Virus record (IMG/VR): IMGVR_UViG_3300009103_000001
Location: 62,001-126,000 of that record
DNA length: 64,000 nt
Reading direction: 5' to 3' (one strand)
Part shown: one piece after another, positions 313 to 53,158 of the stretch
Layout of the letters: every line of letters starts with the position of its first letter
Position numbering within the stretch: the stretch's first letter is position 1
Position numbers and translations under genes: made by a program
Notes under the pieces: generated by a model
The model's input: only the letters and a program-made list of their open reading frames with translations
Told to the model about the DNA's origin: nothing
Databases searched by the model: none

Positions 313-861
313 ATGGATATAAGAAAAATCATAAAAGAGGAAATGGAATCTAAAAATATAGGATATGAAGATATTGTATATGAAGATGATAACCTAATAG
401 TTATATATCCAAAAACAAGGGAAGCTTCATGTAATTATGGTGAAGACACAAATTGGTGTACAGCAGCTGAAGGTGGACAATCTTTCCATGAATATAATGA
501 TAAAGGTAACTTATATTATCATATATGGAAATTTAAAATGCCTAATAATAAACAAAACTATCAAAAAATTGCTAGATTCATTGAATATGGTAAAGAATAT
601 GGTGAACTTGGTGATTTTTTCTTATTTGATGATAGTCAAGTGGATAAGTATGAAATATTATTTAATATTTTAAATGGTAAAAAATTAAAGGAGGGTGGTT
701 TTGAGTATCCAGCAGAGTTAAAACCATTAAATGATTCTTGGGAAAAAGCTTTTATTGCTGTTGATACACATTATGCAAAAAATGGTTTACACAAAACACC
801 AACATATACGGAACCCGATATAGAAGATTTATGGGATGACGATTATGAAGAATTTTTCTAG
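313..861 (+). CDS. Leader-bearing protein (MDIRKIIKEE) with YG-x-x-T-x-WC domain, paralog of 1391 and 52418
   Basis: VYEDDNLIVIYPKTREASCNYGEDTNWCT motif shared with two other ORFs. Confidence 0.8.
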   Translation: MDIRKIIKEEMESKNIGYEDIVYEDDNLIVIYPKTREASCNYGEDTNWCTAAEGGQSFHEYNDKGNLYYHIWKFKMPNNKQNYQKIARFIEYGKEYGELGDFFLFDDSQVDKYEILFNILNGKKLKEGGFEYPAELKPLNDSWEKAFIAVDTHYAKNGLHKTPTYTEPDIEDLWDDDYEEFF

Positions 862-950
862 TGTAAATTGACTTTTATAGTCAATAACTTATATTTATAT
901 AGTAGACCAACCAATTAGGTACACACCTTAATCAATAATTAAAAATTATT

Positions 951-1070
951 ATGAGAAATTACGACCCAAACGATAAACCTTGCTTTGATGGTGATATTTA
1001 TGAAGATTTTATAGATGAAATCCCAGAAGAAGATATTTATTATAATATAGATGATTCTTTTGAATATTAA
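951..1070 (+). CDS. Small acidic hypothetical protein (39 aa)
   Basis: MRNYDPNDKPCFDGDIYEDFIDEIPEEDIYYNIDDSFEY*, A-rich upstream context; below the ORF-track size cutoff. Confidence 0.45.
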   Translation: MRNYDPNDKPCFDGDIYEDFIDEIPEEDIYYNIDDSFEY

Positions 1071-1390
1071 AAAAACATAATCATAAGAGATATAAGACCA
1101 TATACTGATACTAAAGACCTAGAGGTAGGTAAAAGATATATTGCCTATGATATAGGTAATGATGAACTTCATGGTGAACCTTTTATTGTTTTAAAAAAAA
1201 ATGAAAGTATAGATAATATACAAATTCACATCAAATGGCTTAATATGAATAGAGGTACTATCATAACAGAAAAATCTATAGGAAATTGGGAACCAATATT
1301 TAGACCTAGTATGGAGTGGATGTGGTTCTATAGATAATTTAATTCACACAACTTTATTGGATATTTATTATTAATAATATATTTATTGAT

Positions 1391-2839
1391 ATGGATATTA
1401 AATTATTATTAGAAAGAATTATACTTACTGAAGGTAGGGTTGAGAATGCTAGAAAAAAATATCCTAATATACCAGATAAAATTTTTGATTATTACGTAGA
1501 TAATGACCCATCTGGTAATCAAAAGTACCTTAATTGGGTTTTAAAAACTATAACAGCTGATTGGGGTATTACACAAACATCACATTTTAGACAAAATCAT
1601 TCTGAGTTATTAGATAGTTTAACATTCTTCCATGAAAATAACCAAGCGTTTAATAAAAAAGATATAAATCATTATAAAAATTTAACTATGTTTTTCCAAA
1701 CCATTGCTGAGGTTAGGGAAAAGGTGAGACAAAAAAAGGAAGAAAAAAAGGCTAAAAAACAAAGAAACCTTGTTTATCAAGATAAGGATTGGGTTGTAAT
1801 ATCACCTAAATCACATTTAGCTTCTTGTGTTTATGGTTCTGGTACAAAATGGTGTGTTACAATGAAAGATTATTCACATCATTGGGATAGATATTCTAAA
1901 AACGCAACATTCTTTTTTATAATAGATAAAAATAAAGATGATTCGGATAACCTATATAAAGTCGCTTTTAGAAAAATAGGTAGAAGTGGTAAGGTTGAAT
2001 TATGGGACGCTAAAGATTACGAGTTTAGTGAAAATAAAACAGGTTTAGATTATTTAGAAAAGCTACCAAAAAAGATGTTAGAACTAATTGAAAAACATCA
2101 TAGAATATATTTCCCTGAGTCTGAAGGCCCACCAGAATGGATAGAAGATAAACCAAGAGCACAAGCTTTGTATAATCATACTGATGATGAAGATTTGATG
2201 GATACAGGGGATTTCAGATACGGAATACCAATATATGAAACTTCGGAAAATTATTATCAAGTTGCGAATGAACAAGAATTAGATGATGCTTTATGGGAGT
2301 ATTATGATGAATATGATGATTGGGATTTATTGGAGTATTATGATGAAGATGGTTATTACTTATCTTTAAGTGATGAAGAAGAGTTTATTAATGAAATGGT
2401 AGAAAGTCGTGTGGATAATATGGGTGATACAGAAATTCTTGAATATTCGGACAAATTGGACCAATATGAAGACGTTGAAGATGAATTAATAAAATTACAA
2501 GATAGTGAAGATTTTAGTGAAGAAGAAGAACAAAATCTCATAGATAAACAGGTAGAAATATTAGAATTAGCTAAAGAAAATGTTATTTTTGTGGAAACTG
2601 AACATTGGTTTGATTGTCTTGCTGATGGTGTTGTTGAATGTTTAGTAAACGACCATGGCCTTTATAGAAATGCATATGAGTTACATGATAGTGGTGTTAC
2701 AGATTTTGATAGAAGTGGTTTAATAGAAAATAGAGTTTATAATTCTTATGATTGGGATGAAGTTACTGGTGGTTATGGTTATGAAACGGCTGAGGATTTT
2801 AATGGTGAAACTTGGTATGTATATGAGATAGACTATTAA
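1391..2839 (+). CDS. Leader-bearing protein (MDIKLLLERIILTE) with DPS..KYL module, YG-x-x-T-x-WC domain and very acidic C-terminal half
   Basis: 482-aa ORF; ATATTTAT at 1361 and 1379; VYQDKDWVVISPKSHLASCVYGSGTKWCVT. Confidence 0.85.
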   Translation: MDIKLLLERIILTEGRVENARKKYPNIPDKIFDYYVDNDPSGNQKYLNWVLKTITADWGITQTSHFRQNHSELLDSLTFFHENNQAFNKKDINHYKNLTMFFQTIAEVREKVRQKKEEKKAKKQRNLVYQDKDWVVISPKSHLASCVYGSGTKWCVTMKDYSHHWDRYSKNATFFFIIDKNKDDSDNLYKVAFRKIGRSGKVELWDAKDYEFSENKTGLDYLEKLPKKMLELIEKHHRIYFPESEGPPEWIEDKPRAQALYNHTDDEDLMDTGDFRYGIPIYETSENYYQVANEQELDDALWEYYDEYDDWDLLEYYDEDGYYLSLSDEEEFINEMVESRVDNMGDTEILEYSDKLDQYEDVEDELIKLQDSEDFSEEEEQNLIDKQVEILELAKENVIFVETEHWFDCLADGVVECLVNDHGLYRNAYELHDSGVTDFDRSGLIENRVYNSYDWDEVTGGYGYETAEDFNGETWYVYEIDY

Positions 2840-2970
2840 CCCATATTTTTAAGTTTATTTTCTAATTCAGTAATTTTTTCTAAATACCATTCTATAATTG
2901 TTTCATTATGGTGTAAACATACTTCTTTTTTATAATATTTAATATGTTCTATTATTTCTTCTTTTTCCAT
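2836..2970 (-). CDS. Small hypothetical protein (44 aa)
   Basis: MEKEEIIEHIKYYKKEVCLHHNETIIEWYLEKITELENKLKNMG*, fills the intergenic gap. Confidence 0.45.
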   Translation of the reverse strand: MEKEEIIEHIKYYKKEVCLHHNETIIEWYLEKITELENKLKNMG

Positions 2971-3026
2971 TTAAAAAAAATATAAAAGATAATTTAATTT
3001 GTAAATACTTTTATTATTATTATAAA

Positions 3027-21245: not shown

Positions 21246-22109
21246 ATGGCGAATAAAAGAATAGACCAATTACCAAAAAATACTAACGCGTTAAAAGACT
21301 CGGATTTAATACCTATATGGGATGTTGTTAATAGTAAAACTGAAAGTGTATCTTTAGGTTCTTTATCTAGTTTTATAGATACGGCAACATTTACTGGTAA
21401 TACAGAAGCTACTTGTATATCTAATTTATATGTTAGTAATCTTTTCCCTTGTTCACCATTAACAATTTACGGTAATGTTGTTATACCTTCAGGTATAACG
21501 GTAGGTGGTACCATTACATGGTCTGGTGGTAGTGGACATAGTGGTCACGGAGTGACCATTACACCACAAGGTATTACCATAACTGGTAGTACAAGTGGTG
21601 GTACAGGTACAACAAGTACTACAATAACAAGTAGTGGTATTAATACACCTGGTTTAACTACACCTAATATATCTACGTCAGGTATAACAGTAGGTGGTAC
21701 CATTACATGGTCTGGTGGTAGTGGACATAGTGGTCACGGAGTGACCATTACACCACAAGGTATGTCAATAACTAGTAGTGGTAGCACTATAATAATTTCT
21801 AACTCAGGTATATTAAATAATACTAGATTTTTAGGTAATACTGGTGGTACTATAACTATAAATGATTATTTTATAATAATTAACGGAAATGGTAGTCCAA
21901 CATGGACACTACCTAATTCACCTAATAATGGTAAAGAATTTTTATTTCGTAGAAACGATACAAATATAGGTACTTGCACTATTCAAACTTCTGGTAGTGA
22001 TGAAATTTTAGAATTAAATACTGGTACAGTTAGTACATCTATAACATTAATAAATGGTGAATCAAAAAAAGTTATTTACCATGATGCCATATGGTATGAA
22101 GTAATATAA
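21246..22109 (+). CDS. Fibre-like virion protein with internal duplication
   Basis: MANKRIDQLP N-terminus; C-x11-CSP module; duplicated 28-aa segment; C-terminal TLPNSPNNGKEFLF fibre-type domain. Confidence 0.8.
   Translation: MANKRIDQLPKNTNALKDSDLIPIWDVVNSKTESVSLGSLSSFIDTATFTGNTEATCISNLYVSNLFPCSPLTIYGNVVIPSGITVGGTITWSGGSGHSGHGVTITPQGITITGSTSGGTGTTSTTITSSGINTPGLTTPNISTSGITVGGTITWSGGSGHSGHGVTITPQGMSITSSGSTIIISNSGILNNTRFLGNTGGTITINDYFIIINGNGSPTWTLPNSPNNGKEFLFRRNDTNIGTCTIQTSGSDEILELNTGTVSTSITLINGESKKVIYHDAIWYEVI
21489..21763 (+). repeat. Two 86-bp direct repeats (21489-21574, 21678-21763) with one mismatch
   Basis: tcaggtataac(g/a)gtaggtggtaccattacatggtctggtggtagtggacatagtggtcacggagtgaccattacaccacaaggtat. 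Confidence 0.9.
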
Positions 22110-22118
22110 TTAAATAAT

Positions 22119-22511
22119 ATGGGACAAAACTTTTTTATACGTAAAAATTCAGAATTACCAATATTAAAAATGAAAGTTATTAATGATGGTAGAAGTGATT
22201 ATAAAAAGATTTTTGATAATCTAGAGAATGCTGCAGTGACATTTTCAATGGTCGATTCTGAAACAGGTAAACCAAAAGTATTTAATAAACAAGCTTTTAT
22301 AATACCAGTAATAAAAGATATATGTAAAGAAGATGAAGAATACTATATTGGGTATAAATTTAGTGAAAGAGAAGTTAATAGAGTGGGAACATATAAAGCT
22401 GAATTTAAAATAGATTTTTTAGATGATGGGTGTTCATTAATTGTACCAATAAGAGAAGATTTATTTGTTAATGTAACAGATAGTTTCACTAACTCAAAAA
22501 TAGTTTGTTAA
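22119..22511 (+). CDS. Putative virion structural protein (BppU-like/Ig-like)
   Basis: FFIRKNSELPIL...AAVTFSM...GTYKAEFKIDF pattern; structural gene context. Confidence 0.6.
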   Translation: MGQNFFIRKNSELPILKMKVINDGRSDYKKIFDNLENAAVTFSMVDSETGKPKVFNKQAFIIPVIKDICKEDEEYYIGYKFSEREVNRVGTYKAEFKIDFLDDGCSLIVPIREDLFVNVTDSFTNSKIVC

Positions 22512-23050
22512 TGGAAAAATTAATTAAAAAAATATTAAAAGAAGAATTATTAAAAGAAAACTTAAGGTTTGATGATATCTATAGTGAGTTATGGGATAAG
22601 ATGTTATATAGTGTTTGTATGAAGTACACTAATGATATTAATGTAGCACAGGATTATTGTCAAAATGGTTTTATGAAAGTATATAATAATCTTCATACAT
22701 ATAAAAATACTGGTTCTTTAGAAGGTTGGGTTAGAAGAATTATTAATAACTCAATGATAGATGATTTTAGAAAAAAGAAAAATCAACCAACTGCACAAAC
22801 AATAGATGAACCGGATTGGGGACGTATAGATTCAGGGTATGATGATGAAGAATACAGTGAAGATGATAGGATGCACTATGTTAAACAAGCTATAACAAAT
22901 CTAAGCCCATCAAACAGAGAAGCTTTTGAATTATACTTGGATGGTTATAAACATGAAGAAATCGCTGATATGTTGGGCATTAGTGTTGTGGCCTCTAAAT
23001 CAAGGGTTTTTAAAGCTAAAAGAGAAATTAGGAAATTAATTAATCTCTAA
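22511..23050 (+). CDS. ECF-type sigma-70 factor carrying the shared leader (MEKLIKKILKEELLKE)
   Basis: Region 2 AQDYCQNGFMKVY...GSLEGWVRRIINNSMIDDFRK; region 4 LSPSNREAFEL...HEEIADMLGIS...SKSRVFKAK. Confidence 0.9.
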   Translation: MEKLIKKILKEELLKENLRFDDIYSELWDKMLYSVCMKYTNDINVAQDYCQNGFMKVYNNLHTYKNTGSLEGWVRRIINNSMIDDFRKKKNQPTAQTIDEPDWGRIDSGYDDEEYSEDDRMHYVKQAITNLSPSNREAFELYLDGYKHEEIADMLGISVVASKSRVFKAKREIRKLINL

Positions 23051-27767: not shown

Positions 27768-27787
27768 ATAAATATCAAGATATTTAT
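27768..27787. promoter_or_regulatory. Back-to-back late promoter elements ATAAATATC-AA-GATATTTAT
   Basis: Perfect 9-bp inverted repeat between divergent genes 27764(-) and 27792(+). Confidence 0.65.
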
Positions 27788-27791
27788 GAAT

Positions 27792-33565: not shown

Positions 33566-33594
33566 TGCCTAAAGATATTTATAGATAAAACTCT

Positions 33595-35624: not shown

Positions 35625-35697
35625 TTATTTTTAATGTTCACATTAAATAAAGATAAGTTATTGTTATTAGTGTAGATATTTATATTAAAATATTTTT

Positions 35698-37624: not shown

Positions 37625-38407
37625 ATGAATTTTGGTACTGTTAAGAATATATTTGTTGAAAAACTTATAGAATCCCATATTTCTGGTGAAAAAACAGGTA
37701 AAAACTTATATAAAAAGTTTTTAAAAACACTTAATGAAAGTGAAACATTAAAGACAGCTTTTGTTGTTTATAAGAATATTGAAAGTAATACAATTAGTGA
37801 TAAATTTGAGGCAAACCATTATTTAAAAGAAAATTTATCGTTAATTAATAATTTTACAGGAAAAAAATCATTAGTAGAAGAAACTAAAAAATTAATAGCA
37901 ATTTTAAAAGAAAATGATATTAATTTAGATGTTAAATCTAATAACTTACACGAATCTTTAGAAATACTTTTAACTAAAACTAGTAGTTTAAAAACCATAA
38001 ACAAATTACACGAATCTAGAATAAATGTTATAGATTGGTTAATTTCTAATAAAGATAGGGAAGAAAAAAGTGATTATGTTAGGGAAAATATAAATCCTAA
38101 GAAATTTTTAGATATAGCAACAAATAAATTTAATGAAAGATATTCAGAATTAACTGAAGAAGAAAAAAATATTTTAAAGGTACTTAAAGAATCTGACGAT
38201 AGTAGTTTAAAAAATATGGTTTTAAAACTAGTTAAAGATAACATTAACATTATAAATGAAAATTTGGATAAGTATTCAAATAATATGGATGTTAAAGGTA
38301 AGTTATTAGAAACTAAAGATAGGGTTTACAGAATGGTTGATAGTGATGATGATTTAGGTAATAAAATTTTAAAATTATATGATTTAAAAAATAGTATTAA
38401 TGGGTAA
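37625..38407 (+). CDS. Hypothetical head-module protein (helical, many LxE sites)
   Basis: CATATTTATT at 37601; directly after the portal. Confidence 0.8.
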   Translation: MNFGTVKNIFVEKLIESHISGEKTGKNLYKKFLKTLNESETLKTAFVVYKNIESNTISDKFEANHYLKENLSLINNFTGKKSLVEETKKLIAILKENDINLDVKSNNLHESLEILLTKTSSLKTINKLHESRINVIDWLISNKDREEKSDYVRENINPKKFLDIATNKFNERYSELTEEEKNILKVLKESDDSSLKNMVLKLVKDNINIINENLDKYSNNMDVKGKLLETKDRVYRMVDSDDDLGNKILKLYDLKNSING

Positions 38408-38915
38408 GATGTTTGGGTTTATTTTGGAGAATTTTGGGTTCAACTGTAAATATGAGTTTATGGGTTCAATGGTACACACACAAGTACTAGCTTTAACATT
38501 ACCTATAGCCGGCATTAGTTCAATAATTGAATCGTACTTTGGTTTACAGGGTTTAACAGTCCTATCTTTTGTGTTACTAATAACACTTGAACTTATATCG
38601 GGTATATGTGCGTCTAAGGTAAATAAAGAAAAAATCTCTTCTAGAAGGTTTAGTAGGTTTGGTTTTAAATTATTTGTATGGGTCACATTATTATTTATTT
38701 TAAATAGTTTAAGATTGGAATATTCCACATACGATACAACAATAGGTAAAACATCTTATTTATTATTTAATTGGTTACATAGTACAGTTTTTATTTATGT
38801 TAATTTAGAATATCTAATATCAGTTTTAGAAAATTTAGGGGTTATATCTGGTAAGAAAAAAGGTACATTAATTTCAGCAATTAAAAATAAACTAAAAAAC
38901 ATTCTTAAAAATTAA
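38400..38915 (+). CDS. Putative holin (phage holin 4-like)
   Basis: Multiple TM segments; ELISGICAS...ISSRRF...K...EYLISVLENLG. Confidence 0.7.
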   Translation: MGKMFGFILENFGFNCKYEFMGSMVHTQVLALTLPIAGISSIIESYFGLQGLTVLSFVLLITLELISGICASKVNKEKISSRRFSRFGFKLFVWVTLLFILNSLRLEYSTYDTTIGKTSYLLFNWLHSTVFIYVNLEYLISVLENLGVISGKKKGTLISAIKNKLKNILKN

Positions 38916-39329: not shown

Positions 39330-40460
39330 ATGAAAAAAGTTTTTTTAGAATACGTTTGGTTGGACGGAAATCAACCACAACAATTAAGAAGTAAAACTAA
39401 AGTTGTAAAACCTGAAGATATTAGAAAATATACTGATTCGGGGGTTATAAACCCCGAATATTCGGGATTTATTTGGGATTTACCTAAATGGTCTTTTGAT
39501 GGTAGTTCAACAAAACAGGCTAAAGCTGGAAAGGGGGAAAACACTGATTGTGTTTTAAAACCTGTATTTTCTTGTGATGACCCATTTAGAGGTGATTATC
39601 ATTACATTGTCCTTTGTGAGGTTTTAAATCCAGACGGAACCTTACACCCAACAAATAAAAGAGGTGAGTTAAGGGAGTTTATGGAAAAAAATAAAATAAC
39701 GGACTCTAAAGTTAGTTTAGAAAAAGCCAATTGGTTTGGTTGGGAACAAGAATATACTTTAACCACAAAACCGAATTTTAAAGAAGGTGAAGGATTACCA
39801 CTTGGGTTCAGACCTAATGAAGAACCTAGACCACAAGGAGATTATTATTGTGGTGTTGGAGCAGATAATATCACAGGTAGAAGAATTGTGGAAGAACATT
39901 TAGAAAAATGTGTTGAAGCTGGTTTGGATATCTCAGGTATTAACGCGGAAGTTATGTTAGGGCAATGGGAATACCAAATTGGACCTGTAACATCTCTTGA
40001 AGGGTCGGACCAATTATGGGTTTCTAGATATATTCTACAACGAGTGGCCGAAGAAAATGGTGTTAAAATATCATTTCACCCAAAACCAAAAACTGGTGAT
40101 TGGAATGGTTCAGGATGTCATGTCAATTTCTCAACCCCTGAAATGAGAAAAGAAGACGGTATTAAATTAATTAAAGATACAATGGCTAAATTAACACTTA
40201 CTCATGATGAACATATTAAAGTATATGGTTTATATAATGAAAAACGTATGACAGGTGAACATGAAACTTCTAGTATAAACGATTTTAGTTATGGTTATAG
40301 TACAAGAGATACTAGTATCAGAATTCCAGCACAGTCAATAATTGATGGTAAGGGTTATTTTGAAGACCGAAGACCCGCTTCTAATTGTGACCCATACAGT
40401 GTAGCATTACGTATGTTAAAAACTGTATATAACACTGTGAATGAAACAGTAGAAGTTTAA
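39330..40460 (+). CDS. glnII: Glutamine synthetase type II
   Basis: EYVWLDG, LRSKTK, WSFDGSST, EQEY, NAEVMLGQWEYQIGP, DWNGSGCH, SIRIP and YFEDRRPASNCDPY. Confidence 0.95.
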   Translation: MKKVFLEYVWLDGNQPQQLRSKTKVVKPEDIRKYTDSGVINPEYSGFIWDLPKWSFDGSSTKQAKAGKGENTDCVLKPVFSCDDPFRGDYHYIVLCEVLNPDGTLHPTNKRGELREFMEKNKITDSKVSLEKANWFGWEQEYTLTTKPNFKEGEGLPLGFRPNEEPRPQGDYYCGVGADNITGRRIVEEHLEKCVEAGLDISGINAEVMLGQWEYQIGPVTSLEGSDQLWVSRYILQRVAEENGVKISFHPKPKTGDWNGSGCHVNFSTPEMRKEDGIKLIKDTMAKLTLTHDEHIKVYGLYNEKRMTGEHETSSINDFSYGYSTRDTSIRIPAQSIIDGKGYFEDRRPASNCDPYSVALRMLKTVYNTVNETVEV

Positions 40461-42289: not shown

Positions 42290-43018
42290 ATGAAAATATT
42301 AAAACCAGGAGATGAGGGATATGGTTATATCATTGAGTATGATGCCGGATTTATTTCACCATCATTAACATGTAAAGACGGTGTGTGTTCTAATTCTAAT
42401 TTGATTAAAGAATTTAAATCTGGTTTAAATTTCGGATTAGATGGGGAGTTACCAGATAAAATAGAATTATACGCTGTTCTTCAAAAATGGGGTGTGGAGA
42501 ATAAAAATGGTAGAGTATATACAGAAGAAATTTTAAAAAGAGAGGCAAAAAGATACCAAGAATTTATAGATATGGGTACATCACTCGGTGAATTGAATCA
42601 CCCAGAATCATCAATTATTGATGCTGACCGTGTATCACATAGAGTTACAGAAATATGGTGGGAAGGTAGAACATTAATGGGCAAAATCGAATTAGACACA
42701 ACACCAGGTTATTTAAGTGGTGGTGTGATTAGTTCTGTTGGTGATAAAGTTCTTAATATGATTAGAAAGGGATGGACTGTTGGCATATCTTCTAGAGGTG
42801 TCGGTTCGTTAAAACAAGAAGGTGGTAAAAATGTTGTTCAAGACGATTTCGAATTAATATGTTGGGATATTGTAACATCACCATCTACACCAGGTTCTTG
42901 GATATCGATAAGTCAACAAGATTTGACACCATATACAGAATCAGTTAAAAAAAATAATAATTTATTATCCGAAGAAGAACATACATTATTGAATAATTTA
43001 AATAAATTTTTATTATGA
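42290..43018 (+). CDS. Prohead core protein protease (T4 gp21-like)
   Basis: NKNGRVY, LGELNHP, VSH, GISSRGVGS and DIVTSPSTPGS; start moved to ATG 42290 after CATATTTATT at 42264. Confidence 0.92.
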   Translation: MKILKPGDEGYGYIIEYDAGFISPSLTCKDGVCSNSNLIKEFKSGLNFGLDGELPDKIELYAVLQKWGVENKNGRVYTEEILKREAKRYQEFIDMGTSLGELNHPESSIIDADRVSHRVTEIWWEGRTLMGKIELDTTPGYLSGGVISSVGDKVLNMIRKGWTVGISSRGVGSLKQEGGKNVVQDDFELICWDIVTSPSTPGSWISISQQDLTPYTESVKKNNNLLSEEEHTLLNNLNKFLL

Positions 43019-43296
43019 AAAAAATAATTAAATTAAACGAAAACGATATAGGGAACTTGGTTAAGAAAATAATCAAGGAAGATAGAACTGATTTTGAAAA
43101 AGTTTATATAATAGTTAATAGAGAAATACACGGTTATGAGGCGGTAGAGAATGTATATAAGACGTTGGAAGATGCGGTAAAAGATGATGTATTTGACAGA
43201 TACGAACAAACGCCAGAAATACTAAACGACCCAAATGATGGGGGGTTATATGGTATGAGTGAAACATTTTATATATTACCTTATAAAGTAAATTAA
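43015..43296 (+). CDS. Leader-A cargo protein (MKKIIKLNENDIGNLVKKIIKE)
   Basis: Leader shared with six other ORFs. Confidence 0.8.
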   Translation: MKKIIKLNENDIGNLVKKIIKEDRTDFEKVYIIVNREIHGYEAVENVYKTLEDAVKDDVFDRYEQTPEILNDPNDGGLYGMSETFYILPYKVN

Positions 43297-43313
43297 AAAT
43301 AATTTTTATTATA

Positions 43314-43634
43314 ATGAAAAGAATTGAAAAACAAAAGAGACGGTTAATTGAAGAAGCTAATAAAAGGGTTCTAAAGGAATCCGCTGAATTGACTGAATTA
43401 CACGATGATGTATTATACTTAACACCTGAATACCGTTTGACTGGTAATAGGGGTGAGGGTGTTCGTGTTTATGAAGAAATAATGGATACTGTTAATTCAT
43501 ATGGTATAGAACCATCTGATGAGGCTAAAGCTTTAATTAAAAGACTTGAATACGACCTTAGTGCTTTAGAGGGTTTCGATGAAAGAGTGGTAAAATTATA
43601 TGAATCTTTAAGTGGAATAAATATTAATGAATAA
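43314..43634 (+). CDS. Leader-C cargo protein (MKRIEKQKRRLIEEANKRVLKE)
   Basis: Leader related to those of 54431 and 54613. Confidence 0.8.
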   Translation: MKRIEKQKRRLIEEANKRVLKESAELTELHDDVLYLTPEYRLTGNRGEGVRVYEEIMDTVNSYGIEPSDEAKALIKRLEYDLSALEGFDERVVKLYESLSGININE

Positions 43635-43641
43635 AATAATT

Positions 43642-43980
43642 ATGAAAAAAATAATTAAATTAAACGAAAACGATATAGAAAATTTGGTTAAGAAAATAAT
43701 CAAGGAAGAGGGTGAAGAGTATAGAAGTAAAGACCCAGACCAATTGGATATGTTTGATGGCACAGTTAAAGATAGGGAATTAGAACAAGAATATAAAGAA
43801 TGGGAAGAAGAGGATGATAAAATGACAGATATATATAATGATATTTATGACACACTTGAACCGGTATTGAATAATATTCTTGATAAGTATGGAGAAGATT
43901 TTGATTTAATCGCCAATGATGACATGATTCAAAACATAGTAGAGGATTGGATGTATCCAGATGGAGGTGATGAAGATTAA
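43642..43980 (+). CDS. Leader-A acidic cargo protein
   Basis: Start moved to ATG 43642 at the leader. Confidence 0.8.
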   Translation: MKKIIKLNENDIENLVKKIIKEEGEEYRSKDPDQLDMFDGTVKDRELEQEYKEWEEEDDKMTDIYNDIYDTLEPVLNNILDKYGEDFDLIANDDMIQNIVEDWMYPDGGDED

Positions 43981-44010
43981 AAGGATAATAATATTTATAA
44001 TAAAATAATC

Positions 44011-45156
44011 ATGAAAAAAATAATTAAATTAAACGAAAACGATATAGAGAATTTAGTTAAAAAAATAATCAAGGAAGATAGGTTACAAGAATTAGATAAA
44101 TTAACTTATGATAGTGCAGCTGAAAAAGCTTCAGAAAGAGGTATACCCGCTTTATCTGATAGATTTAGAAAACATGGACAAGAACATGGTCTAGGAAAGG
44201 AAAAAGAACAATTCACTTTAGTGATTGACCATAGCAGTCTTGGAGAAAGGGAATATACTTATAAAGTTGAGTCTGTGGAGGAAATGGAAGATGGTAAAAC
44301 TTTAAAAATAAAATTAGTTGACATAGATAACCCACAAAATGTTCATACATATACAGGAAGTATTCGACTCACCAACCCAAACAAAAACAGTAGGTCACTT
44401 AAACGTGGGGATTATAAACTAATTTTATATTTTAGAGATAATTATTATACTTTAGCTAAAACAAGAAAAGATGCTAAAAATTTATTAAATATGTTAATTA
44501 AAAATATGGGTGGTAAACACATGTTCCACCCACTAAAAAATATAGACCCTAGAACTTTAACTCTTGGGTATTCAAATTTTGGTGAAAATATTAAAAGAAG
44601 AAAAACACTTAGTGAAGATAGAACTGATTATGAGATGAGTGGTGCTAGAAGTCGTAAAGACTATGTCTCTAATCCAAGAGAAAGAGATATTACTGGAATG
44701 TTCGGTAAATATTCTGAAGATGTACCACCAATGGTAATTAGATACATGAGAAAAAATCCTGAAGCTATTGTAAAAAGATTATATAAAATATATGGTGATA
44801 AAATATATGATTATATACCACAACAAGTAGATATGGATTTAGTTAGAAATAACCCGAATGATGCCGATTTAGGGGCACAAGTTAGAAGTCGTTTTAATTC
44901 TGAAAATATTAATGAATGTGGTGAAGGGGGTTATATGACAGAAGATGGTTGTGTTGATTATGTCGAGGAAAATAGAAGACCTAGAAGAATATCTGAATCA
45001 AACGGTAAAGGTTGTGCTGATACAGAAAAAGGTTGTATTAGAAAAAGAAAAAGTGGTTGGGTAATATTAAATAATAAAAAAGGTGGTGTTTGGAGAAAAT
45101 GTTCTAGTAGAAAAAACTGTGAAGAACAATTAGATGCATATCACGCAAATCAATAA
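44011..45156 (+). CDS. Leader-A multi-module protein
   Basis: ATATTTAT at 43991; internal LQE, LSE, INE and ISE sites separate modules. Confidence 0.85.
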   Translation: MKKIIKLNENDIENLVKKIIKEDRLQELDKLTYDSAAEKASERGIPALSDRFRKHGQEHGLGKEKEQFTLVIDHSSLGEREYTYKVESVEEMEDGKTLKIKLVDIDNPQNVHTYTGSIRLTNPNKNSRSLKRGDYKLILYFRDNYYTLAKTRKDAKNLLNMLIKNMGGKHMFHPLKNIDPRTLTLGYSNFGENIKRRKTLSEDRTDYEMSGARSRKDYVSNPRERDITGMFGKYSEDVPPMVIRYMRKNPEAIVKRLYKIYGDKIYDYIPQQVDMDLVRNNPNDADLGAQVRSRFNSENINECGEGGYMTEDGCVDYVEENRRPRRISESNGKGCADTEKGCIRKRKSGWVILNNKKGGVWRKCSSRKNCEEQLDAYHANQ

Positions 45157-45158
45157 TC

Positions 45159-45464
45159 ATGAAAGTTAAAAATATGTTATACGCGGGTCTTGGTATGGGT
45201 ACAATGGTATCTAAGAAGACTTATGAAGCTTATGAAAATTTTGTAAAAAGTGGTAAGGAGTTGGACCCAACAGTAAGTTCTACTATTGATGATTTTTTTA
45301 GTGATTTGGAAAATCAAAAAAAAGAAGTTAGAAATAGAGTTGAGGAAATTTTTAGTTTAACAGCGGATAAATTAGGGTACATCAAATTAAATGAGTATGA
45401 AAATTTATTAAAAAGAATAAAAACTTTAGAAGCTGAGTTAGCACAAGAAAAAAATAAAAAATGA
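45159..45464 (+). CDS. Phasin-like coiled-coil protein
   Basis: LYAGLGMG...FVKSGK...LLKRIKTLE resembles PhaF/PhaI-like phasin family proteins. Confidence 0.55.
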   Translation: MKVKNMLYAGLGMGTMVSKKTYEAYENFVKSGKELDPTVSSTIDDFFSDLENQKKEVRNRVEEIFSLTADKLGYIKLNEYENLLKRIKTLEAELAQEKNKK

Positions 45465-45805
45465 AAAAAAGAATTGTAAAACTAAACGAAAACGATATTG
45501 AAAGACTCGTTAATAGAATTATAAAAGAAGATGAAAAAGTATCATCTTCACAACTTAAACAAAAAATGAAACAAACTAGTATGGATACTGGTAGTTTAGG
45601 TTTAACACCAAAAGAAAGAGAAGTCTTTAGTACAGCAATAGATATGTTAAAAGATTTTTTCGCACAACAAGGAAATCAGGCAACAGGTAAAGCTTTAAGT
45701 TTATTTAATAGATTTAAGGATAGTTTAAAAGATGTTAAAGCTGAACCAATTAAATCACCAGAAGAGGAACAAAATACTGGTACAGATGAATTCGCGGACC
45801 AATAA
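45461..45805 (+). CDS. Leader-A cargo protein (MKKRIVKLNENDIERLVNRIIKE)
   Basis: Shared leader. Confidence 0.8.
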   Translation: MKKRIVKLNENDIERLVNRIIKEDEKVSSSQLKQKMKQTSMDTGSLGLTPKEREVFSTAIDMLKDFFAQQGNQATGKALSLFNRFKDSLKDVKAEPIKSPEEEQNTGTDEFADQ

Positions 45806-46296
45806 TGGGATTAATTCGTAAAATAATAAAAGAAGAACTTCTTAAGGAAGTTGGGGGATATGATGACCCAACTATAATGGCTCAACATTCTGGTGCAACA
45901 TTACGTTCACTAATAGAAGTATTGTCTGGTATGTTAGAGGCTATTAAAAGATTAGCTCAAAAAATATCAAAAGGCGGGTTAGATAAATTTAAAGGTAGAG
46001 ACGTATTATTTAATTTATCTGACATAATAAATGAAGGATTAAGATTAACAGGTTTATTAATAAAAGATTTCACAGAAGATGATATTATATTTGAAGGTAA
46101 AAAGTTTATTGAAAAAATGAATGAGTTTAAAAGAAAGATTAGACTTTTATCTAATCTTGGTTCAAGTTATACAGAAAAAGACTATAATGAGAAAATATTA
46201 GAATTGATATTTAAATTGGAACCGACAATAAACAGTTATGGTAATAGTTTAAATGATGTTAATAAAAGATTCATGGATAGGTTCGATATGATATAA
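45805..46296 (+). CDS. Leader-B cargo protein (MGLIRKIIKEELLKE), helical
   Basis: Leader nearly the same as that of the sigma factor at 22511. Confidence 0.8.
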   Translation: MGLIRKIIKEELLKEVGGYDDPTIMAQHSGATLRSLIEVLSGMLEAIKRLAQKISKGGLDKFKGRDVLFNLSDIINEGLRLTGLLIKDFTEDDIIFEGKKFIEKMNEFKRKIRLLSNLGSSYTEKDYNEKILELIFKLEPTINSYGNSLNDVNKRFMDRFDMI

Positions 46297-48064: not shown

Positions 48065-49888
48065 ATGGGATATTTATTAAAATCTGGTGAGGTTGGAAAT
48101 ATCGGACTTAAGCATCAAAAAGCTATCCGTGAAGCAACCGTAAACAAGTGGAATGACCTAGGATTTCTTGAAGGTTTAGATGGGCATGTTAAAGAAAACA
48201 TCGCTCTTCTTTACGAGAACCAAGCGTCAACACTTATTAATGAGACAACAGATACGGCTGGTGGAGCATCAACTGGTTCTTTTGAAACAGTAGTTTTTCC
48301 AATCGTAAGGCGTGTTTTCTCAAAATTGTTAGCAAACGACATCGTTTCTGTTCAAGCATTAAATTTACCAATAGGTAAACTTTTCTATTTCGTACCAAAA
48401 GTATCGGATAGAGTTGAGAGTACATCTCCATCTTTTGCTGGTGGAGCATCTGGTGCTACTGCATCACATGGAGCACCAATAATCTGTCACTGTAACACAA
48501 CAGACTGTAATCCTACGACTTACTCTGAATGTGCTAAAAATATGTATGATAGATTTTATGATGACGGAATGTGGGACCAATCAAAAGGTCAAATAATGTT
48601 ACACGTTGATAACGGTACTATGGTAGTGTTTACTGCTTGTACTGACGCAACACTTGGTGTTCCTCATGAATTCATTGGTGGTGTTACTGCACAAGCTGGT
48701 GACGGTTCTGTTAGAAGTCAAATTGTACAAATTTGTAACTTTAGTACAGCTGGAGCTGGTAGACTTTTAGGTCCTGATGGAAATGAAATGGATACTGAAT
48801 CTTTCTTAGCATCAATTGCTGTTACACCTACTGGTACTTTAGTTGATAAAGATGGTTTAACAATTGCTGAGGCTGGTGACCAATTACCAGTTAGAGTTGT
48901 TACACAAAAATATGGTAGAGGTATCGTTTCTTATGGTGATATTTGTGACGCTGAAGGATGTATATTCTTAGAAGTTGATTTAACTCACCCAGTATGTGTA
49001 GAATGTGGTGATGGTACTTTCGATGGTTATATCGGAGCAGCATCTGGAACAACAGCTATTGTATCTGGTGTAGGTTCTAGTGACTTAGGAGGTGTAAACC
49101 TAGCAGTTACTTGGAGGTCTTACCAAGACCTTGAAGAAGAGTGTGAAATGGGAGAAGTATCTTTCGAACTTGATTCTGTTACAGTATCGGTTACTGAAAG
49201 AAAATTAAGAGCTACTTGGACTCCTGAATTAGCACAAGATGTGTCAGCGTTCCATAACATTGATGCAGAAGCTGAATTAACAGCATTACTTTCTGAACAA
49301 GTTGCAGCAGAAATCGACAGGGAAATCCTTAGAGATTTAAGAACTGGGGCGGCTTGGACATTAAGATGGGATTATAACGGATGGAAAAGGTTACCAAATA
49401 ACAACGGTTACACTCAAAAAGATTGGAACCAAACGTTGATTACAGCGGTTAACCAAATTTCAGCTCAAATCCATAAGTCTACTCTTAGGGGTGGTGCTAA
49501 CTTCGTAGTTGTATCTTCTGAGGTATCAGCCATTATGGATGACCTTGAATACTTCCACGTATCTAACGCAGCTCCAGAACAAGACCAATACAATATGGGT
49601 ATTGAAAGAGCTGGTTCTCTTGGTGGACGTTACACTGTATACCGTGACCCTTACGCTCCAGCACACTCGGTGTTAGTTGGACACAAAGGTAAATCACTAT
49701 TGGATACTGGGTATATTTACGCTCCGTATGTACCATTACAGTTAACTCCAACAATGTACAATCCATTTAACTTTGTACCTATCAAAGGTATAATGACGCG
49801 TTACGCGAAAAAGATGGTTAATAACAGGTTCTACGGACATATCCGTGTGGACGGTTTACGTACATTTGATGTTAGAGAATTGAGATAA
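48065..49888 (+). CDS. Major capsid protein (T4 gp23-like) with Cys-rich insertion
   Basis: PIVRRVF..LLANDIVSVQ, RKLRATWTPELAQD, EIDREI, YAPYVPLQ and GIMTRY. Confidence 0.95.
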   Translation: MGYLLKSGEVGNIGLKHQKAIREATVNKWNDLGFLEGLDGHVKENIALLYENQASTLINETTDTAGGASTGSFETVVFPIVRRVFSKLLANDIVSVQALNLPIGKLFYFVPKVSDRVESTSPSFAGGASGATASHGAPIICHCNTTDCNPTTYSECAKNMYDRFYDDGMWDQSKGQIMLHVDNGTMVVFTACTDATLGVPHEFIGGVTAQAGDGSVRSQIVQICNFSTAGAGRLLGPDGNEMDTESFLASIAVTPTGTLVDKDGLTIAEAGDQLPVRVVTQKYGRGIVSYGDICDAEGCIFLEVDLTHPVCVECGDGTFDGYIGAASGTTAIVSGVGSSDLGGVNLAVTWRSYQDLEEECEMGEVSFELDSVTVSVTERKLRATWTPELAQDVSAFHNIDAEAELTALLSEQVAAEIDREILRDLRTGAAWTLRWDYNGWKRLPNNNGYTQKDWNQTLITAVNQISAQIHKSTLRGGANFVVVSSEVSAIMDDLEYFHVSNAAPEQDQYNMGIERAGSLGGRYTVYRDPYAPAHSVLVGHKGKSLLDTGYIYAPYVPLQLTPTMYNPFNFVPIKGIMTRYAKKMVNNRFYGHIRVDGLRTFDVRELR

Positions 49889-49910
49889 GAATCTTAATAT
49901 ATAACAAACT

Positions 49911-49940: not shown

Positions 49941-49972
49941 ATGCACTAAACTATTTATAATAAAACAATAAA

Positions 49973-50140: not shown

Positions 50141-50368
50141 TTTTATAAAAATAAAATACGTGAAACAGTTTTTTTTATTTTTTTCTTGATACGTATTCTT
50201 CTTATACGTGAAACTCTATTTTCAATTTCGAATAACTTACTTATGTTATCGTTAATTTCTATTATTTCTTTTCTTTTTTTCATAATGCATTAAGTATTAA
50301 ATATCAAATAATTCTCAAAAGTATCAAAAATTTAATAATAAAACAAGATATTTATAAAAAAGATTTTA

Positions 50369-50803: not shown

Positions 50804-51842
50804 AAAAATTATAAGAGAAGAGTTGGACGATTTTGATTGGGCTAGGGATGATATCTACTTTTCAATAGACTATATTCTAGGTAAACAGATGTATTTTAGG
50901 CATAGTAATATAAATGAACTTGAAAGAGAATATAAAGCTTATAACAATGACAGAATACAACAAATACCAAAAAATAAAATAGTCTTAGGTAATATTAAGT
51001 GGACTAGTATGTTTACGGCAAATTATGTTAAAAATAATATAGCACACATCTATTTACAAGACAGCACTAGTTTACAATATTCAGTGGATATGGTTGAATT
51101 TTATGTAAATAGTGGTATATGGGCTTTAGAGGATGATAATGGTAATATTATTAATGATTTCTCTGGCCAATATTTAAAAGAATCAGAGTTGGATTGGATT
51201 CAAAAATCTGAACCAGATAGAAAAGATATTAGAAGTTTCAATAAAGAAAGGTATAAAACCACTCTTAATTATAATAATGCTGAAATAGGGGATAAATTTA
51301 TCCCACCTGGTAGTCATATGGTATGGACCGTTGATGATAAAGAATTTTGGCGTGGCAAATGGGGTAATGACGAAAATGGAGACCCTGAATATTATAGATA
51401 TTTTATTATATGGATAAAAAATGAGAGGGGTGACCTCAAAAGAAAGTATTATAATAAAACGAATAAATTATTTCCAGGTACTTATAGACCTTGGAGAAAA
51501 ATAGTTGACTCTAATATTAATGAATCGAAAGAGTTTGATTGGGCAAAAGAAATTAAACCTGAAATGACTGCTGAAGCTGTACCACTATATTATAATAAAC
51601 CTCTTTTTTGGTATCATCGGGGTGAACCTAGGCAATGTTGGGGGATGCCTACCATTTATTGGTTATCAAAAAGTTATGTCACTGAAAGGGGTGAAAATAT
51701 ATCTTTATTATGTTATGATGACGGATGTGATGTAGAATCAAAAATTGAATGTAGTGCATTTTATGACTATACAATTGCTAATATGTTTAATGAGGGGACA
51801 CTTAGATTTCAATCACAGTTAAGTGATATTGAACCAACTTAA
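50793..51842 (+). CDS. Putative three-module polyprotein (MNIKKIIREELDDFDW; LKESELDW; INESKEFDW)
   Basis: Start moved to ATG 50793; internal linkers at 51174 and 51516. Confidence 0.8.
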   Translation: MNIKKIIREELDDFDWARDDIYFSIDYILGKQMYFRHSNINELEREYKAYNNDRIQQIPKNKIVLGNIKWTSMFTANYVKNNIAHIYLQDSTSLQYSVDMVEFYVNSGIWALEDDNGNIINDFSGQYLKESELDWIQKSEPDRKDIRSFNKERYKTTLNYNNAEIGDKFIPPGSHMVWTVDDKEFWRGKWGNDENGDPEYYRYFIIWIKNERGDLKRKYYNKTNKLFPGTYRPWRKIVDSNINESKEFDWAKEIKPEMTAEAVPLYYNKPLFWYHRGEPRQCWGMPTIYWLSKSYVTERGENISLLCYDDGCDVESKIECSAFYDYTIANMFNEGTLRFQSQLSDIEPT

Positions 51843-52205
51843 AAAACGTTTCCAGAGTGGTTTAGTTTTACCATATGATGTTTCGTATAAGGGAACCCAT
51901 TGTTCACCATTCCATGTAACTAAATGACCACTATCTTCATCAAATTTAACTCTGCCTTGATAATTAGGTAATTCAGCACTACCGGTTACAGTTAAATTAG
52001 ATATAGTAGTTTGTAGGTCATTTACTGTAATAGCCATACCACCATCGTTACCATTAATAAAAAGAGTGTTAGTTTGGTTAGGTTCCTCGAAGGGAATTTG
52101 AATTTGGCCGTTTTCAATAAAACCTCTTTGTCTAAGTGAAGTACCTATCACAACTTTAGCTTTACCACTTTTAAAATCGTGTTTTGCTATTATTTTTTTA
52201 AACAT
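51819..52205 (-). CDS. Hypothetical protein
   Basis: 128-aa ORF. Confidence 0.7.
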   Translation of the reverse strand: MFKKIIAKHDFKSGKAKVVIGTSLRQRGFIENGQIQIPFEEPNQTNTLFINGNDGGMAITVNDLQTTISNLTVTGSAELPNYQGRVKFDEDSGHLVTWNGEQWVPLYETSYGKTKPLWKRFLSWFNIT

Positions 52206-52225
52206 ATATTAATTATAATGATAGC

Positions 52226-52256
52226 AAAAAAAAAGGGAAGATTACTTCCCTTTTTT
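52226..52256. terminator. Intrinsic terminator (bidirectional type)
   Basis: aaaaaagggaag-atta-cttcccttttt. Confidence 0.75.
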
Positions 52257-52421
52257 ATAAACATCTAAATAAGATACCCCATATTTTCTGAGTTTCTCAC
52301 CCAAAGTGGCGTCATGAGGGTTTTCCTTGATTTCTTTAATAAAATGTTCTATAACATCCGAATAAAGTAAAACCAGTTCGTCTATATTAGATGTCGACCT
52401 TATTTTTTCTTTAAACGTCAT
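52242..52421 (-). CDS. Small protein with P-x-D-x-x-L-G-x-x-x-R motif (59 aa)
   Basis: MTFKEKIRSTSNIDELVLLYSDVIEHFIKEIKENPHDATLGEKLRKYGVSYLDVYKKGK*; ATGA-coupled to 52418. Confidence 0.65.
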   Translation of the reverse strand: MTFKEKIRSTSNIDELVLLYSDVIEHFIKEIKENPHDATLGEKLRKYGVSYLDVYKKGK

Positions 52422-53158
52422 TCTCTTATGCCTTTATTTTTAGCTACAACCATATTAGGTTCACCTTTTTCCATTTTTTCAGTTATGATATCCATAATTT
52501 CTGGTTTTACCATTCTATATACTTTTAGGGTATCAGTAACATTGAATTGTTTATCTTGAACATCCCAAATAGTCATACCATCTTTCTTATTTTTATCATT
52601 GTGGAAAGCCATTTTTGAGAAAACATTAGTTCTACAATCTTTATCTTTAACGGTTTTGTCTATTAAGAAAACTAAAACACCATTTTCAGTATATTGTTTG
52701 AAATAACGCCCATAGTTGTGGTCCTCACTTGATACACACCATTTTGTAGCTTTACCATACATGTTTGAACTACGTGTGGTAAGTGGTAAAATAACGACCC
52801 ATCTATCATCTTCATAAAGAACTTCTGTTTCCTTATTTTTAACTTCAGAACGAGTAATTTTTTCTTTGGCGAATTTAACAGCCTCTATAATGTCTTGGTT
52901 TGACTCATAAGAATATATGTCTTTATTTTCCAAAAGATTTCTTTCAGATAAATCTTCAAAATCTTTTATAACTTCAAACATTTCTTTAAAGGTTTCATTA
53001 TTAAGCTCATTATGAATCCAATCAACCCAATCCTTAGTTTGTTTAATCATGAAAGGTAAATATTTATTAGACTTTGTAGGGTCATTTTCAGATAAAACTT
53101 CTATTACATCAATAGAGTAAGTTGGGTGTTGTGCTTTAAGGTCTCTTTTTTTCGCCAT
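52418..53158 (-). CDS. Leaderless paralog of the YG-x-x-T-x-WC family
   Basis: NDPTKSNKYL, KDIYSY and LYEDDRWVVILPLTTRSSNMYGKATKWCVS. Confidence 0.85.
   Translation of the reverse strand: MAKKRDLKAQHPTYSIDVIEVLSENDPTKSNKYLPFMIKQTKDWVDWIHNELNNETFKEMFEVIKDFEDLSERNLLENKDIYSYESNQDIIEAVKFAKEKITRSEVKNKETEVLYEDDRWVVILPLTTRSSNMYGKATKWCVSSEDHNYGRYFKQYTENGVLVFLIDKTVKDKDCRTNVFSKMAFHNDKNKKDGMTIWDVQDKQFNVTDTLKVYRMVKPEIMDIITEKMEKGEPNMVVAKNKGIRE

Follow-up and report, generated by a model that had tools for sequence, protein, structure and literature searches.

Leader-tagged and leaderless paralogs of a putatively PcfJ-related protein family in a marine T4-like phage

The PcfJ-like family (PF14284) is named after PcfJ of the Enterococcus plasmid pCF10. 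In MuF-toxin fusions and in the polyvalent proteins of phages and conjugative elements, a conserved module is combined with changing C-terminal domains. ModA and ModB of phage T4 are early-expressed ADP-ribosyltransferases. T4 Alt, a paralog of these, is carried in the virion and has its propeptide cleaved, and the T4 gp21 protease follows the cleavage rule L/I-X-E (PMC9026906). The internal proteins of T4 form a diverse set that counters host defence and has only the targeting sequence in common (PMC3012670).

PF14284 and the family described here span more than ten thousand phage sequence clusters, none with an assigned function or a solved structure. Our literature search found no account of PcfJ function, and our structure searches found no solved PcfJ structure. 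Here, we analyzed the family in a window of 64,000 nucleotides (the whole stretch of DNA studied) from a 210-kb phage contig. Judging from sequence, the phage belongs to a marine clade of T4-like phages whose signals are of Bacteroidota type, and in this clade the family has two arms. A preliminary description of the window had named three open reading frames as paralogs, and they lie at the positions given there. However, the contig carries five in total, two of them beyond the window:

313-861, + strand, paralog A (313), 182 aa, with a leader, the alpha/beta core only and an acidic C-terminal part
1391-2839, + strand, paralog B (1391), 482 aa, with N-terminal L-x-E sites, a helical subdomain, the alpha/beta core and an acidic tail
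52418-53158, - strand, paralog C (52418), 246 aa, the module alone, no leader
genome 186619-188259, + strand, extra paralog outside the window
genome 1-792, - strand, extra paralog outside the window, cut by the contig end

The claim of paralogy was confirmed. The pairwise similarities (BLASTP, 313 vs 52418, E 1e-11; 1391 vs 52418, E 2e-19 over 236 columns; 313 vs 1391, E 7e-9) are far above chance, and on this measure the three are true paralogs and long-diverged members of a single phage protein family. Their alignment contains the common block that had been reported, Y(E/Q)D..(V/I)VI.P.....S..YG..T.WC...Y. The motifs NDP(S/T)...KYL and KDI..Y are indeed shared by 1391 and 52418, and by these two only; they are missing in 313 because it is without the whole N-terminal helical subdomain. 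The full module consists of this subdomain (DPSGN.KYL.W, KDI..Y) followed by the alpha/beta core with YG.GT.WC. In 52418, the two parts occupy residues 1-109 and 106-234 (52457-52843). In 1391, the helical subdomain (about residues 15-125, with NDPSGNQKYL and KDINHY) and the core (about residues 117-242, nt 1739-2116) are followed by a very acidic tail (residues 245-482, pI 4.05). The core of 313 covers about residues 20-100 (nt 370-612), and its C-terminal part is also acidic (pI 4.24). This copy matches PHROG 28193 and 17056 (E 2e-8) and forms a separate deep clade with the relative P0193 in our tree.

A relation to PcfJ-like proteins had been put forward for testing, and it appears to exist, although remotely. 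The PF14284 profile, whose positions 3-120 cover KDI..Y through YG.GT.WC and the next strand, scored 1391 (E 1e-3) at 19.3 bits as a protein and 22.7 bits in the genome scan and 52418 at 15.8-16 bits, and did not match 313; all three window proteins thus stay below the gathering cut-off of 25 bits. Among the relatives, 19 of 67 matched PF14284 at E ≤ 0.01. The relative P0122 exceeded the cut-off (30.6 bits), and P0291, an ortholog of 52418, has a precomputed match. A Foldseek search of BFVD ranked 22 unnamed family members first and then about ten phage proteins named ‘PcfJ like’ (E 6e-3 to 0.1, probability 0.4-0.99).

Fold searches gave no convincing match between the module and a solved structure, and no fold or sequence match pointed to an enzyme class. 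GNAT acetyltransferases filled many rows of the structure comparison (Z 3.4-5.0, rmsd 4-5.6 Å), all short of the Z 7-8 that the best background matches usually reach, and the Pfam search of the window proteins gave no GNAT match. No ADP-ribosyltransferase family or structure of the Alt/Mod kind was returned by any search, nor was any polymerase similarity.

The family comprises 10,245 clusters at E ≤ 1e-3 and is apparently restricted to phages. The AF2 model of 52418 has a pLDDT of 90.6, and a second model of the family reaches 92.9. G135, W140, C141 and K182 (52418 numbering) are invariant, and six polar residues are invariant or almost so at about 25% overall identity. The conserved cysteine proposed earlier holds for the W-C position, which is occupied in 189 of 190 copies (150 representatives); the A-S-C cysteine, in contrast, is replaced by Asn in 52418 and its orthologs. 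The set of polar invariants (Cys, Lys, Asp, Thr, Ser and Tyr, with a Gly-rich loop) suggests a catalytic or ligand-binding pocket. Such a pocket, with a nucleophilic cysteine, may act on a conserved host component, either in anti-defence or in host take-over, and a catalytic role for the cysteine is plausible.

The two arms differ in their upstream signals, which are the following:

296-305, + strand, phage-specific promoter-like motif GATATTTATA, 8 nt before the ATG of 313
1361-1368 and 1379-1386, + strand, two copies of ATATTTAT upstream of 1391
53192-53222, - strand, promoter of host (Bacteroidota sigma-A) type, TTTG-N19-TATCTTTG, 33 nt before the ATG of 52418

The short, putatively early arm, represented by 52418, is a leaderless, slow-evolving syntenic core gene with a conserved host-type promoter. 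The sequence TTTG-N19-TATCTTTG (in general form TTTG-N19-TAnnTTTG) is one that we take to fit the Bacteroidota consensus. The host-type pattern was found five times in the window against 4.5 expected, which is chance level; support for the promoter comes from its position and its conservation in relatives. Of 24 related loci, 19 keep this architecture before the ortholog, despite differing spacers. ATATTTAT is absent upstream of 52418 and occurs upstream of its orthologs in none of the 24 loci. The gene product has neither a leader nor an L/I-x-E site, so that both parts of the earlier assignment, host-type promoter and no leader, stand. Across the 24 loci the orthologs are 54-75% identical; the corresponding figures in the same phages are 72-82% for the capsid protein and 45-64% for the scaffold. 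In the tree, 11 short leaderless forms group together, and 0 of 500 label shuffles were as tight.

The long arm (313, 1391 and the two copies outside the window) combines fast evolution, the phage motif and an L/I-x-E leader. ATATTTAT is the most enriched upstream 8-mer (47 of 258 upstream regions, 3.9 expected) and precedes terminase, portal, protease and tail genes. The motif lies upstream of 313, 1391 and the L005 copy, and it looks like the phage's own, -10-only promoter. It also heads an operon containing DNA polymerase B, so what is called ‘late’ here may in truth be expression from a phage-specific promoter. A search for RNA runs containing the phage found none. The leader of 313 is MDIRKIIKEE (313-342), with I-K-E at residues 7-9. 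The N-terminus of 1391, MDIKLLLERIILTE|GR (1391-1432), has L-L-E at residues 6-8 and L-T-E at residues 12-14. Both copies thus have the leader and the motif ascribed to them, but what is added in 1391 is limited to about its first nine residues; ILTE-GR...KKYP, which comes next, belongs to the conserved family sequence and is present in internal copies as well. Of 113 copies, 80 have L/I-x-E-(G/S/N)R at a distance of 6-30 residues from the N-terminus, and L-x-E-GR also precedes internal copies (13 cases); this second motif might be no more than the domain's first helix.

The leader has the consensus (K/R)(K/R)II(K/R)EE, often continued by DFDW(V/I)KD. It matched 32 N-terminal sites and one interior site in the proteome, and at least 30 other contig proteins have such a leader. 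No leader gene was found inside the host-promoter units of the contig. The association between leader and late motif is weak on the contig alone (Fisher p 0.085), and many leader genes are without a motif of their own. The two classes that had been claimed were reproduced in related phages, where ATATTTAT is upstream of 7 of 10 long forms and the host-type promoter is at 4 of 5 short forms; this pairing of tag and promoter recurs in three other genomes. In a phage pair with 79% identical capsid proteins, the tagged copies were only 33-36% identical to their full-length counterparts. Measured against the capsid protein, tagged copies therefore evolve fast and 52418 slowly, and the rates of the two arms clearly differ.

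These data also bear on the idea of an ordinary multigene family without any functional split, in which the leader would be a common N-terminal amphipathic helix, for example for the phage's Hsp70- or ClpB-like chaperones, and the motifs would not define classes. The phage does encode ClpB-like and Hsp70-like proteins, and the chance-level count of the host-type pattern, the ATATTTAT before the replication operon, the L-x-E-GR of internal copies and the many leader genes without a motif would all be expected. However, this explanation is improbable given the promoter architecture of the 52418 orthologs and their lack of the phage motif, the pairing in other genomes, the different rates of the arms and the detection of a homolog in virions by mass spectrometry (see below).

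Fast evolution of the tagged copies could instead reflect anti-defence. The module, or the acidic tails of these copies, would then, at entry, neutralise a nuclease or sensor of the host, in the way of T4 IPI* or the P1 Dar proteins. The tagged copies would come in with the DNA, the C-terminal parts of 1391 and 313 are strongly acidic, and the T4 internal proteins are likewise a diverse set held together by a targeting sequence (PMC3012670). However, the acidic parts are outside the shared module, and the early copy is conserved like the capsid protein, which fits better with an essential take-over or core role than with an arms-race protein. We consider this explanation unlikely.

Two further features of the window concern the fate of the leader:

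42290-43018, + strand, T4 gp21-type prohead protease (Pfam Peptidase_S77, E 4e-25)
43015-46296, + strand, cluster of leader-bearing ORFs (43015, 43627, 44011, 45461 and 45805) between the protease and the scaffold-like and capsid genes

The phage thus encodes a gp21-family protease, which is the enzyme expected to trim L/I-x-E leaders, and a gp21-site tag is carried by 313 and 1391 and not by 52418. It is probable that the tagged copies end up in the phage head. On the model of the T4 capsid-targeting sequence and gp21, they would enter the prohead core and be cleaved behind L/I-x-E. Met1 of 52418 aligns with the residue directly after L-T-E of 1391, so trimming there would give 1391 an N-terminus at the position where the early copy starts. 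Once trimmed, the proteins would be ejected together with the DNA. With tagged copies packaged and another copy made early, injection would supply the cell with the module and immediate-early transcription would renew it, as with T4 Alt and then ModA/ModB. The preliminary description had already suggested supply both from the virion and by early expression, and our analysis supports this in part. We give this two-arm reading, taken as a whole, a probability of about 0.5.

A homolog from another phage is in agreement with packaging. Pseudomonas phage PA5oct gp205 (EST35_0205, QCG76086.1) belongs to the family (hhalign probability 99.4%, E 1e-21) and has the motifs DPTSNQKYLQW, KKDINQYK and GKGTRWC. 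Its record annotates it as a structural/virion protein by ESI-MS/MS, and its gene sits in a run of virion-protein genes. It has 482 aa, the same length as 1391, but PA5oct is of another phage family and infects another host, the N-terminus of gp205 is without the leader of the window phage, and gp205 is the single family copy detected in that genome. In the related phage MIJ3, the homologous gene follows the large terminase gene.

The same two homologs would suit a module that is a carrier rather than an effector, and so would its fusions in other phages to LRR_5, LRV, LRR_8, HEAT, DUF4116, WG repeats, Fic, GNAT and Peptidase_M23 domains. The module would then serve as an adaptor for virion incorporation or ejection of variable C-terminal cargo, and the copy that stands alone and is made early would do something else, in assembly or in regulation. 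Up to five copies of the module sit within one protein of other phages, and 1391 and the L004 copy have long and unrelated C-terminal parts; no recognisable effector domain was found in the window's own copies. However, the most conserved member is the module alone, untagged and behind a host-type promoter, and nearly invariant polar residues at such low identity are unusual for a mere adaptor. A carrier role is rather unlikely, though less so than the two alternatives discussed above.

Returning to the two-arm reading, its fullest form is a speculation that we hold only tentatively and regard as doubtful. In it, phages and conjugative plasmids would deliver the PcfJ-like module to the cell along with their DNA, and the module would be either a cysteine-dependent enzyme that has so far escaped recognition or a ligand-binding fold for which the PDB has no example. 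The gp21-type protease would trim a portable leader so that the virion-borne N-terminus becomes that of the early-made form, and the same leader would load more than 30 cargo proteins into the head. If this is true, the delivery repertoire is far larger than that of T4. Should the leader indeed target proteins to the capsid, the set of proteins packaged by these phages would be unusual in size and variety, with a bearing on the take-over of Bacteroidota by large phages and on engineered protein delivery by phage heads. The clade offers a natural contrast between one constrained, early, untagged copy and several fast-evolving tagged ones, a few residues for mutation (C141, K182 and D202) and an exactly predicted mature N-terminus.

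Compared with known systems, the family resembles PcfJ-like proteins in being carried by elements that bring DNA into new cells, but it has its own N-terminal DPSGN.KYL subdomain and seems confined to phages. As in polyvalent and MuF-toxin proteins, the module is joined to varying Fic, GNAT, M23 and LRR domains in large proteins, although the family is without a MuF domain. The phage has homologs of T4 gp20, gp21, gp23 and TerL, and, as with the T4 internal proteins, many unrelated, putatively late proteins have a short N-terminal L/I-x-E tag and the tagged genes form a cluster flanked by protease and scaffold genes. However, the leader (K/R)(K/R)II(K/R)EE is not the T4 tag, and with about two thirds of the genome covered the tagged genes already number at least 32, where T4 has a handful. 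The arrangement of a presumably packaged and a presumably early paralog is like that of Alt and ModA/ModB, but their fold and motifs are unrelated to the module, and here the conserved copy is the early one. The same likeness holds for the virion and non-virion RNA polymerases of phiKZ-like phages, in which one activity is supplied twice.

The three ORFs described as paralogs in the preliminary description lie at the positions it gave and are homologous by BLASTP (1391 versus 52418, E = 2 × 10−19; 313 versus 52418, E = 1 × 10−11; 313 versus 1391, E = 7 × 10−9). Scanning the entire contig with a profile revealed two more copies beyond the window.

313-861 (+): 313, 182 aa, leader-bearing ("tagged") paralog
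1391-2839 (+): 1391, 482 aa, tagged paralog
52418-53158 (−): 52418, 246 aa, short leaderless "early" paralog
contig 186619-188259 (+) and contig 1-792 (−): copies beyond the window

The block common to all three comprises Y-E-D-D, V-V-I-x-P, Y-G-x-x-T-x-W-C, a conserved Tyr, an I-D-K strand and Y-K-x-A. The motifs NDP(S/T)...KYL and KDI..Y are indeed common to 1391 and 52418, and they are located in the N-terminal helical subdomain; 313 is made up of leader, core and acidic tail, without this subdomain. The C-terminal half of 1391 (2123-2836) is also highly acidic (74 Asp/Glu in 238 residues, pI 4.05), and no family match was found for it. In an 81-member family tree, 313, 1391 and 52418 fell into three separate deep clades, each closest to proteins of other phages; the duplications are therefore old.

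A profile built from the five paralogs was searched against 1.84 billion representative proteins and matched 10,245 cluster representatives at E ≤ 1 × 10−3 and 6,098 at E ≤ 1 × 10−10. Many of the matched proteins are 1000-1800 aa long and contain the module two to five times; elsewhere it is fused to LRR_5, LRV, LRR_8, HEAT, DUF4116, WG repeats, DUF7178, DUF3293, Fic, GNAT or Peptidase_M23. The module may thus be read as a carrier for variable cargo. Across 67 diverse members, G135, W140, C141 and K182 (52418 numbering) were invariant, and K32-Y33-L34, F67, K79-D80-I81, P125, S131, Y134, T138, Y156, A184 and D202 were nearly so; the Cys directly followed the Trp in 189 of 190 copies from 150 representatives. 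The conserved Cys, Lys, Asp, Thr, Ser and Tyr suggest a putative pocket with chemistry, for which no enzyme class can be named.

AlphaFold gave confident models of 52418, with a pLDDT of 90.6 for the complete protein (246 aa) and 92.9 when only the core was modelled. Along the chain, the helical subdomain (1-109) is followed by a beta hairpin, a helix, a Gly-rich loop that closes with W-C, another helix, three strands and two helices. None of the solved structures was a convincing match: the best Foldseek E was 0.3, the best VIA-align Z values were 5.6 (whole protein) and 5.2 (core), both under the usual background, and searching the PDB by sequence returned no hit below E = 0.1. The NCBIfam search gave no match. 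Likeness to E2/Atg10 (UBC) folds appeared in several rows of the first Foldseek list (probability ≤ 0.08, TM ≤ 0.23) but disappeared with the core-only query and was rejected. GNAT, Nudix/DUF402, p32 and IalB likenesses all had Z ≤ 5.2, under background, the numerous GNAT rows having Z 3.4-5.0 and rmsd 4-5.6 Å; we read these rows as reflecting a shared alpha/beta arrangement only. A PD-(D/E)xK assignment, considered from YEDD...IDK, was rejected because the IDK Lys varies within the family, and a MotA-like early activator, considered from the helical and alpha/beta domains, was dropped for want of a fold match.

The preliminary description had raised a relation to PcfJ-like domains. Pfam PcfJ (PF14284) was the sole recurring family match. 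The window proteins scored under its cut-off, but 19 of 67 relatives matched it at E ≤ 0.01, one relative passed the cut-off, and one 52418 ortholog carries a precomputed PF14284 match. When the model was searched against a viral structure library, the first 22 matches were unnamed family members, including proteins apparently from Salicola phage SCTP-2 (which also has tblastn matches), Caulobacter phage CcrBL9 and PA5oct; these were followed by "PcfJ like" phage proteins (E = 6 × 10−3 to 0.1). The ESM Atlas sequence search returned PcfJ and DUF3843 only, both weak, and its structural neighbours were viral throughout and all without names. We therefore treat the family as remotely related to PcfJ-like proteins; by Pfam's own criterion it does not belong to them. 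No function for PcfJ is given in the few relevant papers, and matches to the name are mostly C. elegans pCFJ plasmids.

The source phage is a distant T4-like myovirus. Its IMG/VR contig (210,157 bp, the window being bases 62001-126000; 64% complete by the CheckV estimate; G+C about 29%) encodes a gp20 portal, a gp23 capsid protein, a T4-type large terminase and a gp21-type prohead protease, and several ORFs have Bacteroidota-style lipoprotein signal peptides. The closest capsid proteins in the phage collection belong to huge uncultured phages and to Flavobacterium and Microcystis phages. The region's DNA is present in marine, cold-seep and brine metagenomes, and none of the RNA runs searched contained it. 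The best Gp23 Pfam stretch of the capsid protein covers residues 357-592 only, so that a long N-terminal part is weakly matched or unmatched. The protease, the capsid gene and several other genes are located as follows.

42290-43018: gp21-type prohead protease
48065-49888: major capsid protein, 607 aa
3191-3595: phage-encoded SET-domain protein (Pfam E = 1 × 10−11), adjoining both tagged paralogs
23729-26206 (−): ClpB-like double AAA+ chaperone
contig 21510-23366, beyond the window: Hsp70/DnaK-like protein, assigned from N-terminal sequence only
39330-40460: glutamine-synthetase-like gene, between portal and prohead protease genes
38400-38915: holin-family gene, between the same two genes
27786-28583: weak poly(A) polymerase-like/nucleotidyltransferase palm domain match (E = 7 × 10−5, under cut-off)

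At least 32 otherwise unrelated ORFs carry the leader pattern (I/L)(K/R)(K/R)II(K/R)E or DFDW-type motifs in their first 40-45 residues, and the basic pattern has one interior match in the whole proteome. Type 1 leaders read M.x(I/L)(K/R)(K/R)II(K/R)EE, often followed by DFDW(V/I)KD, and type 2 leaders read MKKIIKLNENDIENLVKKIIKEE. A second, longer variant is found on genes between the protease and the scaffold-like/capsid genes.

Leader-bearing ORFs, window examples: 3727, 22511, 27174 (−), 43015, 43627, 44011, 45461, 45805, 50369, 50796, 53360, 53739, 54135

In T4, gp21 cleaves after L/I-X-E, taking off N-terminal propeptides 7-65 residues long; otherwise unrelated internal proteins reach the prohead core by means of a short capsid-targeting sequence, and both Alt and the internal proteins enter the host by ejection (PMC9026906, PMC3012670). 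By analogy, the shared leader may be a capsid-targeting tag, used far more extensively than in T4. I-K-E occupies residues 7-9 of 313, and 1391 has L-L-E at 6-8 and L-T-E at 12-14; Gly15 of 1391, directly after L-T-E, pairs with residue 2 of 52418 in the BLAST alignment. L/I-x-E-(G/S/N)R occurs 6-30 residues from the N-terminus in 80 of 113 copies with the helical subdomain. Since it also precedes 13 internal copies, it may form the domain's first helix, serve as a processing site, or do both.

Of all 8-mers in the 60-nt regions preceding ORFs, ATATTTAT was the most strongly enriched (47 of 258 regions, 3.9 expected).

(G)ATATTTAT(A), upstream of 48 contig ORFs: window examples 33574-33583, 35675-35684, 50347-50356

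The distance from the end of the motif to the ATG is usually 3-23 nt, and often only 3-7 nt, which implies near-leaderless mRNAs. No −35-like partner accompanies it, only a T-rich tract. T4 late promoters similarly have a −10-type element only, and ATATTTAT differs from the T4 late TATAAATA. It is located upstream of the terminase, portal, protease, scaffold-like and many tail genes, and also of 313, 1391 and a further paralog, the L005 copy. However, it also heads an operon with DNA polymerase B beyond the window; the "late" label of the preliminary description is therefore perhaps too restrictive, and "phage-specific promoter" is the safer name. TTTG-N17-21-TAnnTTTG, which we take to fit the Bacteroidota housekeeping promoter, is found upstream of only eight contig genes, 52418 among them (53192-53222, −, including TATCTTTG), although its raw count in the window equals chance expectation. 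Among 24 related loci, 19 had the host-type architecture upstream of the 52418 ortholog, with differing spacers, and ATATTTAT was absent there from all of them. Downstream of 52418, its early-type unit also contains two small genes (52242-52421, − and 51819-52205, −). Unlike 52418 they are not conserved, tblastn finding one in 2 of the 24 loci and the other in none.

Leader genes were found in units with the phage motif (24) and never in host-promoter units, with 8 undetermined, an association that is not significant on this contig alone. A rival reading is that the tag and the upstream motifs are unrelated to packaging. We explored the two classes further in three relatives, of which the complete one (380 kb) has six family members and the two incomplete ones have four and seven matching places; 15 ORFs with the core motif were found in these genomes. 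Four of the five short forms (246-275 aa) were leaderless and had a host-type promoter. Among the ten long forms (325-597 aa), seven had ATATTTAT 12-31 nt upstream, and most of them had a leader-like N-terminus (M-K-x-I-I-K-E-E-L-L or similar) before L-x-E-G-R. Eleven short leaderless forms grouped together in the tree, more tightly than in any of 500 label shuffles.

The 52418 ortholog has a fixed place adjoining the capsid gene, on the opposite strand, and is 54-75% identical, the same phages' capsid and scaffold proteins being 72-82% and 45-64% identical. The tagged copies share 33% (1391) and 36% (the L004 copy, another paralog) with their full-length counterparts, in a phage whose capsid protein is 79% identical. 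A pattern scan of IMG/VR found no close ortholog of 313 and two weak ones of 1391. The early copy is thus a constrained core gene, and the tagged copies diversify quickly.

PA5oct gp205 (482 aa) is a clear family member (hhalign probability 99.4%, same three motifs), and its GenBank record reads "structural protein, ESI-MS/MS", among other genes so marked. ESI-MS/MS identified 93 virion-associated proteins in PA5oct (PMC7318152); virion proteomics of MIJ3 covered four gel bands only. The presence of gp205 in virions indirectly supports packaging of the tagged copies in the window's phage, as judged by homology.

Both the observation at sequence level and the division into two classes are solid, and the most economical overall reading is that of head-internal tagged copies plus an early short copy. 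The tagged, fast-evolving copies would be head-internal proteins that enter the cell with the DNA, and the short conserved copy would already provide this module in the opening minutes of infection. An anti-defence role, as earlier proposed, is possible for the tagged copies given their fast evolution and acidic tails, but it fits poorly with the conserved early copy. The arrangement of tagged and early copies parallels that of T4 Alt and ModA/ModB.
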